NCBI GenBank assembly: GCA_023515725.1
Contig: JALDTO010000154.1
Location: forward strand, 577,484 to 641,483
DNA from: Amoeboaphelidium protococcarum X5
Lineage: Eukaryota; Fungi; Aphelidiomycota
Direction of reading: 5' to 3'
Length of the DNA: 64,000 nucleotides
Position 1 is the first letter of the stretch, and each line of letters starts with the position of its first letter. Shown one piece after another: positions 19,336 to 28,456 of the stretch. The notes under the pieces are model-generated. The model ran no database searches and had not been told where the DNA came from. It worked only from the letters and a program-made list of their open reading frames with translations. A program made the position numbers and the translations under genes.

Positions 19336-19866
19336 GAGGACTAGGCGAGCACAAAGGCTCTCAACGTCGCTGAGGCCCCGGAGACGAAGGCGCAGTATCA
19401 CGAGGCCACTAAAATGGCTAAGGCCTAAGAAAAGGCGGTGGTGGTGGAGGAGGAGTTTCTGTTGAGATTAGCGTTGACACAGACAACGGTGATGGTATTT
19501 ACGGCGACGGATGAGGACTAGGCGGACGCAAAGGCTCTTAAGGACGCTGAGGCCCCGGAGACGAAGGCGCAGTATCACGAGGCCACTAAAATGGCTAAGG
19601 CCTAAGAAAAGGCGGTGGTGGTGGAGGAGGAGTTTCTGTTGAGATTAGCGTTGACACAGACAACGGTGATGGTATTTACGGCGACGGATGAGGACTAGGC
19701 GGACGCAAAGGCTCTTAAGGACGCTGAGGCCCCGGAGACGAAGGCGCAGTATCACGAGGCCACTAAAATGGCTAAGGCCTAAGAAAAGGCGGTGGTGGTG
19801 GAGGAGGAGTTTCTGTTGAGATTAGCGTTGACACAGACAACGGTGATGGCAGTAACGGCGACGGGC
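19336..19866. repeat. Three tandem 177-bp coding repeats
   Basis: GAGGACTAGGCG recurs at 19336, 19513 and 19690 (period 177 bp = 59 codons); copies are near-identical. Confidence 0.97.
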
Positions 19867-20059
19867 GCAATGGCTTTTTGGGACGCGGCCGAGGAGGCTT
19901 AGGCTTAGGCGGGAGAGACGTTTCTGTTGAGATCATAGTTGTCACTGAGGTCGTTAATGATGATTTAGCAATTCTCCTTTATCCTTTCTGTTCCAGCTAC
20001 CTATCAGCAAGAGTTGTTATAATCGCGCATAACAGTGACAATAGTAAAAACTTATTCAT
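19361..20059 (-). CDS. Secreted Pro-rich tandem-repeat protein, 232 aa
   Basis: Signal MNKFLLLSLLCAIITTLAD followed by 59-aa repeats (LISTETPPPPPPPFLRPQPFQWPRDTAPSSPGPQRPQEPLRPPSPHPSPQIPSPLSVST); TGA stop inside the last copy. Confidence 0.8.
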
Positions 20060-20194: not shown

Positions 20195-20204
20195 ACCAAT
20201 CAGA
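20195..20204. promoter_or_regulatory. CCAAT-box-like motif ACCAATCAGA upstream of secreted gene 19361-20059
   Basis: Identical 10-mer also at 20919 and 28567, each about 110-145 bp upstream of a related secreted gene. Confidence 0.55.
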
Positions 20205-26870: not shown

Positions 26871-26965
26871 TTTACTGACTAGAACAGTGGGTACTCTAAA
26901 AGAATTCATTAATAATAGGATCGATCAAGTAGTTTACGAATGATTATTGGCTATTTTAACATCAT

Positions 26966-28456
26966 TCACCGTTTTCTAAACCAGACATCATCGACTTTAC
27001 GTTTACGACCAAGGCGATCTAGAAAGTCACTCTTCTAGTAGTGACCTATACCGTCTTAATTATCTTCTGGCGTGTCAATATAATCAGCCACATTAATGGC
27101 TTATACATCTCCCAAATCTTCAAGTACACGTACATTGCTATCACTGATGAATCCTAGATCAGAGCCAATCTGCTTCAGACACTCTCTTAATTTATCAGTA
27201 TCTACATAGGTGCCAATCATGTCAATGTAAAGATTACCACATATTGGTGACAATTCGGACACGAGCATTTTCAAAGCTTCAAAGCCATTACGTGCCTAGT
27301 ATGGCTTCTTGGTGAGAGGACTTATTGTTCTATCGCCAAACACCTCCTGGCTATCAATGACCCCGTTTTAATTAGTATCAGACATTGCTAACATCTTGTC
27401 GCCATCAGTGGCCGCACCAACATGCTGATCAATGTCTTCATGATTAAATGAAATGCCAACACCACGCTTGGCACTAACAACACCATCATTATTTAAATCA
27501 AACACCAGAGGGCTACATCTTTTATTGGGACGATTCGGACAATATCCCTGACTAGATGGACGTCGCGATGGCGGTGGTAGTGAAGGGGGAGAAGGAGTTG
27601 GAGGTGGTGGAGTTGATATAGGAGTTGGCGGCTTAACAGGCGGCGGAGTTGCAGTAGGAGGCTTAACAGGAGAAGTTGGTGTCGGAGCAGGAGGTATAGC
27701 AGGTGGTGGAGTAGGAGTTGGTGTCGGAGCAGGAGGTTTAGTAGGTGGTGGAGTAGGAGTTGGTGTCGGAGCAGGAGGTTTAGCAGGTGGTGGAGTTGGT
27801 GTCGGAGCAGGAGGCTTAACAGGCGGCGGAGTTGCAGTAGGAGGCTTAACAGGAGGAGTTGATGTCGGAGCAGGAGGAATAACCGGCGGTGGTGGAGTTA
27901 CTGGTGGGATTCCAGGTGTCTATGTAGTGGTTGTATAAATAGTAGATGTAGTTGCAGTAGTGGTCAAAATTTTAGTAGAAGACTACTTTGAGGATACTAT
28001 AGTGCTCGTTAGGACGGTCGTTGAGGATGCGCGACTTGATGATGTTCCCGGAGTACTCAGAGTGTTCACTTATTTAGTAGCGCTTGTGTTGGAAGAATAT
28101 ATTCTGGTAGAGGCGGAGATAGAATTTATCACATCAGTGGATGTGGTAGAGCAGTCAGAAGAAGTCTATACAGCTGGAGGTTTAATCGTGGTTGATGCCA
28201 CAGTAGTGCAAGGGGTTGTTTCAGCAGTAATAGACGCAGTGGTCGAGCTGTCACTTGATTATGGGGTTTAAATCACAGTTGTAAGCAAGCTACTATCAGT
28301 ACAGGATGATACAGTCAGCGCGACAGTAGAAAACGGGCACGGTGTGCCACTAACCGGACGCAATCTACACTTGACCACTTCCGCCGTCTACTATTGCTGA
28401 TCGGCAAAAGTTAAAGCAATCGCGCTAAGCAGTTTCAAAATCACAAACTTATTCAT
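26966..28456 (-). CDS. Secreted protein, 496 aa: signal peptide, Thr/Ser-rich and Pro-rich stalk, C-terminal FrpC self-processing-module-like Ca2+-binding domain
   Basis: Single frame with UAR=Gln: MNKFVILKLLSAIALTFAD, T/S-rich region, PPAPTP repeats, then CSPLVFDLNNDG...MLAMSDTNQNGVIDSQEVFGDRT...ARNGFEALK...LEDLGDVQAINV...RKVDDVWF-RKR-TGA. Confidence 0.85.
27590..27900 (-). repeat. Imperfect Pro-rich coding repeats (PPAPTP / PPVKPP), extensin/mucin-like
   Basis: Recurrent GGTGTCGGAGCAGGAGG and GGCTTAACAGG units on the + strand. Confidence 0.9.

Follow-up and report, generated by a model that had tools for sequence, protein, structure and literature searches.

A bacterial-type self-processing-module fold at the tip of a secreted stalk protein in the aphelid Amoeboaphelidium protococcarum

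The self-processing module (SPM) is a rare protein fold, so far known from a small number of bacterial RTX proteins, which serves as a tool for protein ligation (NeissLock). Here, we describe an SPM-fold domain in a eukaryote. It forms the C-terminal end of a secreted-type stalk protein encoded on the minus strand, at 26966..28456, of a stretch of 64,000 nucleotides from the genome of Amoeboaphelidium protococcarum X5 (assembly GCA_023515725.1, contig JALDTO010000154.1, positions 577,484 to 641,483), hereafter called the window. The overall reading that we favour, with a probability of about 0.72, is that of a secreted stalk protein whose head is a Ca2+-binding domain of SPM fold, derived from bacteria and not performing the Asp-anhydride reaction. 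It is the first eukaryotic SPM that could be found, and it has been domesticated and multiplied in a green-algal parasitoid that belongs to a sister lineage of Fungi. An earlier interpretation made from the letters alone (the sequence-only reading) knew of no eukaryotic description. This holds insofar as no paper on a eukaryotic SPM was found and the NCBI label of these proteins is hypothetical; it does not hold for domain databases, in which the Pfam family PF26745, named 'SPM', already matches them. The domain family itself is known; the kingdom and the architecture are new, and the active site is of a non-canonical variant.

That the domain is a true relative of the FrpC SPM is supported by sequence profiles and by the predicted fold. 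Searched alone against the Protein Data Bank (PDB), the domain of a paralogue that lacks in-frame UAA or UAG (UAR) codons (L025) retrieved the FrpC SPM (6SJW/6SJX) over its full length with an E-value of 1.8e-8. A profile of seven aphelid sequences found the same module (6sjw_A, E 2.7e-7), as did a 47-sequence profile headed by the window's own domain (E 1.1e-34, with calmodulin next at 2e-3), and all three alignments cover the module from its start Pro through to the last strand. The AlphaFold model of the window's domain is mostly beta (predicted local distance difference test 92.8, predicted template modelling score 0.89). With this model, Foldseek gave 6SJX/6SJW as the sole matches (E 3.5e-7 and 6e-7, TM 0.55-0.63; all others E >2), and VIA-align gave Z-scores of 14.3 and 12.8 with a root-mean-square deviation of 3.0 A over 143 residues, placing Pro17 of the model on residue 1 of the solved SPM chain. 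The structural match is specific, because the SPM fold of FrpC has been described as unlike any other fold in the PDB (PMC7078468). The precomputed Pfam match on the database copy of the protein (P0172) is likewise to PF26745. Both the profile search and the comparison by AlphaFold and Foldseek thus point to the FrpC SPM and not to ordinary EF-hand proteins, and the homology proposed by the sequence-only reading is borne out at the levels of sequence, profile and predicted fold.

The gene is invisible under the standard code, as had been stated earlier, since its frame needs 13 UAA/UAG codons to be read as Gln, five of them within the last 181 codons. When the minus strand from 26960 to 28456 is translated, a single continuous frame appears, interrupted by TAA/TAG only and closed by a TGA stop at 26966-26968. 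Across the window, open reading frames of at least 150 residues number 70 under genetic code 6 and six under the standard code, and the NCBI records of paralogues, which bear the name A. protococcarum and of which two match loci of this genome at 100% identity, are translated with UAR as Gln. This is the organism's own code, and the gene is therefore not broken. Its neighbours on the 820-kb contig are eukaryotic, namely the succinate dehydrogenase flavoprotein (SDHA) and a lipase-like protein. The features of the gene are as follows:

26966..28456, minus strand: whole gene, 496 codons plus the TGA stop, with 13 in-frame UAA/UAG codons read as Gln; database protein P0172
28403..28456, minus strand: signal-peptide-like N-terminus, residues 1-18, with a basic start, a hydrophobic core and small residues before D-Q-Q, read from the translation
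27917..28396, minus strand: Thr/Ser-rich mucin-like stalk, residues 21-180 (T 27%, S 21%)
27542..27916, minus strand: Pro-rich stalk, residues 181-305 (51% Pro), with 42-bp tandem repeats at 27656-27889
27512..27541, minus strand: short basic Cys-containing linker ending in Cys314-Ser315; Ser315 (27512-27514) stands at the position of FrpC Asp414
26969..27511, minus strand: SPM-fold domain, residues 316-496 (181 residues), beginning at the invariant Pro316, which corresponds to FrpC Pro415
27482..27499, minus strand: loop of putative Ca site 1, D-L-N-N-D-G, residues 320-325, aligned with FrpC D419/D421/D423/G424
27344..27379, minus strand: putative Ca site 2, a canonical 12-residue EF loop, D-T-N-Q-N-G-V-I-D-S-Q-E, residues 360-371, corresponding to FrpC D462-E474
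27332..27334, minus strand: Asp375 in E-V-F-G-D, aligned with the structural FrpC Asp478
27179..27241, minus strand: Cys406 and Cys426, invariant in seven aphelid sequences (alignment A2), on either side of the segment that stands in for FrpC Ca site 3
26987..26989, minus strand: Asp490 in V-D-D-V-W-F, counterpart of FrpC Asp579, the same in all rows of the 47-sequence alignment

The layout that had been proposed, a signal peptide followed by a Thr/Ser/Pro stalk and a C-terminal domain, is seen in the translation of this minus-strand frame. The domain region opens with C-S-P-L-V-F-D-L-N-N-D-G at residue 314, and all the motifs pointed out earlier were found. From its composition, the two-part stalk is probably heavily glycosylated.

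The roles of individual residues were taken from the nuclear magnetic resonance study of FrpC and mapped through the profile alignments. In FrpC, Asp414 is the scissile, nucleophilic residue that forms the anhydride, and Pro415 is the first residue of the module; four Ca sites are described (1, D419/D421/D423/G424; 2, D462-E474; 3, D499-D511; 4, D521-E532), D478 and D579 are structural aspartates near the cleavage site, and cleavage is ascribed to a strained, twisted amide (PMC7078468). The aphelid domain has in common with this module the family and fold, the start Pro (invariant in 47/47 aligned sequences) followed by L-x-[LF]-D-x-[DN]-x-D-G, Ca sites 1 and 2, the structural aspartates of F-G-D and D-[VL]-[WL], and the paired N- and C-terminal strands. 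Opposite D456, the FrpC partner of site 1, the aphelid domain has Lys, immediately preceded by an invariant Asp, and Gln363 within the loop of site 2 is encoded by TAA. The differences from FrpC are equally clear. The equivalent of Asp414 is Ser315 in the window's gene, as had been noticed from the C-S-P motif, and every one of the 26 copies read has Ser or Cys there; a search for paralogues that retain Asp-Pro found Asp in none of them. Ca sites 3 and 4 have no counterpart, their place being taken by a helix with the Cys pair and an L-G-F-I-S-D segment, and the Trp451/Trp519 pair is not kept, the position of Trp451 being Ala. The added pair, Cys406 and Cys426, may form a disulfide. The aphelid module also stands at the extreme C-terminus, whereas that of FrpC lies inside an RTX protein, and it comes with a eukaryotic signal peptide and a mucin-like stalk instead of RTX repeats and a type I secretion context. 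Because the nucleophilic Asp is missing in every copy read, a classic clip-and-link reaction through an Asp anhydride appears unlikely for the aphelid domain.

To learn where such a domain came from, 1.84 billion cluster representatives, a library derived from about 15 billion proteins, were searched exhaustively with HMMER. The 268 relatives that this yielded are of three kinds: the aphelid paralogues; about 100 clusters of proteins of 300-800 residues in which the domain is C-terminal; and, more distant, long RTX proteins in which it is internal and accompanied by HemolysinCabind and HCBP_related repeats. The C-terminal-type proteins that carry a name come from Gastranaerophilales or Melainabacteria metagenome-assembled genomes (MAGs). 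A scan of species-representative genomes with a 12-row query alignment gave 66 loci, often several per genome, whose identities span 38-53% and, with few exceptions, lie at 41-50%. Apart from a few with Desulfobacteraceae or other labels, they carry the names Gastranaerophilales, Melainabacteria, 'Cyanobacteria bacterium' MAG, Vampirovibrionales or Caenarcanum.

These Gastranaerophilales/Melainabacteria proteins (for example PHV37_07080, our P0020, and A2039_02285, our P0240; L044-L109) are 41-50% identical to the aphelid domain over its whole length. They resemble it in the C-terminal position, the two Ca sites, the GDKMLAM and LGFISD motifs, the mostly Ser-Pro start, the lack of Ca sites 3 and 4 and of the Trp pair, and the presence of several copies per genome. 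Their N-terminal parts are unrelated, consisting of Asn/Gly-rich repeats, DUF3060, some RTX repeats and, in one case, a type IV pilin-like leader; they differ further in having no signal peptide with a Thr/Ser/Pro stalk, one Cys in place of the pair, and the standard code. In P0020 and similar Gastranaerophilales proteins, the N-terminal 400 residues are short repeats rich in Asn, Gly and Thr that gave no Pfam match. By sequence, the aphelid SPM falls in a C-terminal, two-Ca-site, mostly Ser-Pro subfamily typical of Melainabacteria and Gastranaerophilales. The sequence-only reading had described the later Ca loops as eroded and the module as of FrpC/RTX type. The former has to be revised: the missing sites 3 and 4 and the Ser-Pro start are traits of the bacterial subfamily too, so they are inherited and do not reflect erosion in the eukaryote. 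Of the latter, the assignment to the SPM family stands, but the nearest relatives are Melainabacteria-type proteins with a C-terminal module, not RTX proteins.

Three trees were built with these relatives: a quick posterior mean site frequency tree, a FastTree, and a 65-row LG+G4 tree with ultrafast bootstrap (UFBoot). The last two were built without fragments, long branches and redundant rows. A single clade unites the aphelid sequences with ten environmental ones (Shimodaira-Hasegawa-like approximate likelihood-ratio test 99, FastTree 0.996, UFBoot 99), which is placed inside the C-terminal-type clade (support 100). In the IQ-TREE analysis, the eukaryote clade joins P0039 (UFBoot 100) and then P0068 (85). 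The latter, from JGI metagenome 3300014838 (L111:548-1843), combines a type IV pilin-like leader (G-V-A-L-V-E-Y) with a C-terminal Thr-Pro SPM, and it is judged to be bacterial because of that leader. It ranks among the bacterial sequences closest to the eukaryote clade.

Among the environmental members is a second eukaryote. The protein P0026 (Logan run SRR28148137, L041:612-2633) has 673 residues arranged as signal, Thr-Ser stalk, Pro linker and an SPM starting Asp-Ser-Pro-Leu; its contig carries the intraflagellar transport genes IFT80/122/172. In the same run, P0047 (L042) adjoins an intron-split Rpb2, which shares 64% identity with the aphelid Rpb2. This eukaryote uses the standard genetic code, and its guanine-plus-cytosine content is 44%. 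Since P0026 lies beside IFT genes and P0047 beside a split Rpb2, sequence evidence places the SPM family in one further flagellated eukaryote at least. Several of the remaining environmental members are short pieces starting at an internal Met, as gene calls truncated at UAR codons would look.

Transfer from a bacterium to a eukaryote is, in our judgement, the likeliest history and one that we hold with good confidence, because the bacterial distribution is wide and the eukaryotes make up a single tight clade. The earlier suggestion of horizontal acquisition is supported by the bacterial relatives, the trees, the UAR codons and the eukaryotic neighbours, and the best reading of the locus is that of a bacterial origin followed by full domestication, visible in the UAR=Gln codons, the added signal peptide and stalk, and 27 copies set among eukaryotic genes. 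Several observations weigh against the reading that we favour. Nesting of the eukaryotes within bacteria is moderately supported, with backbone UFBoot values of 20-82; in the FastTree, the eukaryote clade comes out close to the C-terminal subfamily's unresolved base; and P0039, to which that clade is joined, is of uncertain origin. The domain of P0005, 97% identical to that of the window, did not retrieve FrpC when searched alone against the PDB. The window's subclade is diverged, and for this reason the homology rests on paralogues, profiles and fold. Moreover, a search for RNA runs containing the SPM gene's stretch found none. The base position in the FastTree and the low backbone support would also suit a history in the opposite direction, in which the module was an ancient eukaryotic family or an invention of the aphelid lineage that Melainabacteria later acquired. 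This we consider very improbable: many bacterial lineages carry the module, which comes in two architectures, inside RTX proteins or at the C-terminus; eukaryotes contribute one tight clade only, even in a library of that size; and IQ-TREE nests this clade with a bacterial protein that bears a pilin-like leader. Lower still, and close to nil, is the probability that the domain is an ordinary eukaryotic EF-hand protein, a chance likeness of motifs, or bacterial contamination of the assembly. What speaks for a plain EF-hand or a chance likeness is that a Pfam set without PF26745 gave sub-threshold EF-hand matches only (EF-hand_1 on residues 353-372, 19.7 bits against a cut-off of 25.4), and that the separate pieces of the domain between UAR codons matched nothing in the PDB or Pfam, these pieces being too short. 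The Pfam search of P0172 found neither paired helix-loop-helix EF-hands above threshold nor HemolysinCabind repeats, of which the distant relatives P0111 and P0117 have 10-21. The full-length profile and fold matches, however, are only to the SPM, with calmodulin some 30 orders of magnitude weaker. Contamination does not agree with 13 in-frame UAR=Gln codons, a eukaryotic stalk, eukaryotic neighbour genes, 27 copies on large contigs, and relatives of at least 90% identity in two NCBI locus-tag series of the species (MP228 and MIR68). As far as the analyses used here reach, we regard these candidates as refuted by the profile, the fold, the UAR codons, the copy number and the neighbours.

The residue before the invariant Pro raises a further question. 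In a sample of 242 SPM domains gathered around the aphelid query, this residue is Ser in 189, Asp in 37, Cys in 13, Thr in two and Ala in one, so that 241/242 have S, D, C or T and Ser-Pro is five times commoner than Asp-Pro; at the position preceding it, all 20 amino-acid types are seen. On a 115-row tree, Asp and Ser were exchanged at least ten times, and it can be reasoned that each such exchange takes two nucleotide changes, while one-step intermediates are almost unseen. Among the RTX-type domains, Asp goes with F-G-D (5/5) and Ser mostly with F-G-N (45/55); among the C-terminal-type domains, there is no link between the residue and F-G-D or F-G-N. The restriction to four residues points to a chemical or a precise structural role of the side chain before Pro, and in this respect it may be too modest to regard the domain as nothing more than a passive Ca-binding head. 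No paper on Ser-Pro SPMs was found.

A module that still processes itself, by chemistry other than that of FrpC, would account for this restriction. In such a module, Ca2+-driven folding would strain the bond at the module start, and cleavage would follow either from attack of Ser or Cys on the preceding peptide bond (an N-to-O or N-to-S acyl shift) or from hydrolysis of a twisted Ser-Pro amide by water. The stalk would be freed, or its new C-terminus transferred onto a polymer of the wall or the host. The four-residue restriction beside an unrestricted preceding position and the repeated two-nucleotide switches between Asp and Ser are in its favour, as are the attribution of FrpC cleavage to a strained amide, the retention of the Pro, of the D478 and D579 equivalents and of most 'port' residues (V-F-G, N-G-F, D-V-W-F), and the location at the extreme C-terminus, where a cut would release the whole stalk. 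On the other side, neither Ser nor Cys can form an anhydride, an acyl shift would cut a bond other than the one known to be strained, the fifth, transient Ca site is one carboxylate short, and the port Trp451 is Ala with Ca sites 3 and 4 lost; a plain capping or hydrogen-bond role would also fit S, T, D and C. Autoprocessing modules with a Ser, Thr or Cys nucleophile exist in SEA, GAIN/GPS and Hedgehog/Hint, where the fold strains the adjacent bond. None of them is among the Foldseek matches of the aphelid domain, which has no sequence or fold relation to them, and the likeness is a possible analogy of mechanism only. On balance, we consider continued autoprocessing unlikely, though well ahead of the other alternatives. 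Marginally less likely is its fuller version, in which Ser-, Cys- and Thr-Pro SPMs, which prevail in the bacterial sample and account for every aphelid copy read, are active Ca2+-triggered modules with a non-Asp nucleophile, and the aphelid clips its stalks and fixes them covalently to the cyst wall or the algal wall. If that were true, a eukaryotic clip-and-link adhesin system would have been borrowed from bacteria. In any case, the SPM family is wider than described, and the Ser-Pro majority in the 242 domains raises the question of an unrecognised self-processing chemistry.

To return to the non-reacting, Ca2+-binding head, its history and function may be pictured as follows. A single transfer would have carried the module from a Melainabacteria-type bacterium into an ancestor of the aphelid lineage, where it was presumably fused to a eukaryotic secretion signal and stalk and adapted to the UAR=Gln code; the gene would then have multiplied to 27 copies, most of them grouped on few contigs. 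Outside the cell, Ca2+ would fold the head at the tip of the glycosylated stalk, and in the absence of Asp no anhydride would form, so that the head could serve binding or assembly at the parasite surface, the cyst wall or the host wall. Judging from sequence and model, the more likely role is that of a Ca2+-dependent folded head in attachment to the algal host or in assembly of the cyst wall.

Mucin-like stalk adhesins of fungi and parasites and the extensins of plants and algae offer the closest comparison in layout, as they likewise consist of a signal peptide, a long low-complexity Ser/Thr/Pro stalk and a globular domain, and likewise form multigene families with variable stalk lengths. 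In contrast to mucin-like adhesins, the aphelid protein carries its globular head at the C-terminus, with no hydrophobic tail of the glycosylphosphatidylinositol type after it (the end reads W-F-R-K-R). In contrast to true extensins, its Pro-rich part is built on T-P and K-P-P and has neither Ser-Pro4 nor Tyr cross-link motifs. The aphelid SPM proteins are therefore put forward as a candidate surface or adhesion family for the contact between aphelid and host. Melainabacteria include Vampirovibrio, a predator of Chlorella. The kinship of the module may thus hint, speculatively, that genes have passed between two sorts of parasites of algae.

In the A. protococcarum genome, full-length copies of the SPM domain number 27, and the domain is always C-terminal, in stalk proteins of 380-610 residues. 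A clustered multigene family with variable stalk lengths is consistent, by analogy, with a surface or adhesin family. Most of the 27 genes are grouped on a few contigs (C155, C264, C214 and C146), 13 of them on C155. Near-identical gene pairs occur on different contigs (C207/C233, C155/C146 and C214/C264), as would be expected if the assembly holds two diverged copies of the genome.

Elsewhere in the window, a 232-residue Pro-rich repeat protein of secreted type, without an SPM domain, is encoded on the minus strand at 19361-20059, and its signal peptide (M-N-K-F-L-L-L-S-L-L...) is very similar to the one encoded by the SPM gene. Three copies of the 10-mer ACCAATCAGA lie in the window, at 20195, 20919 and 28567; the last copy lies 111 bp upstream of the start of the SPM gene, on the opposite strand, and reads as an inverted CCAAT-like box.

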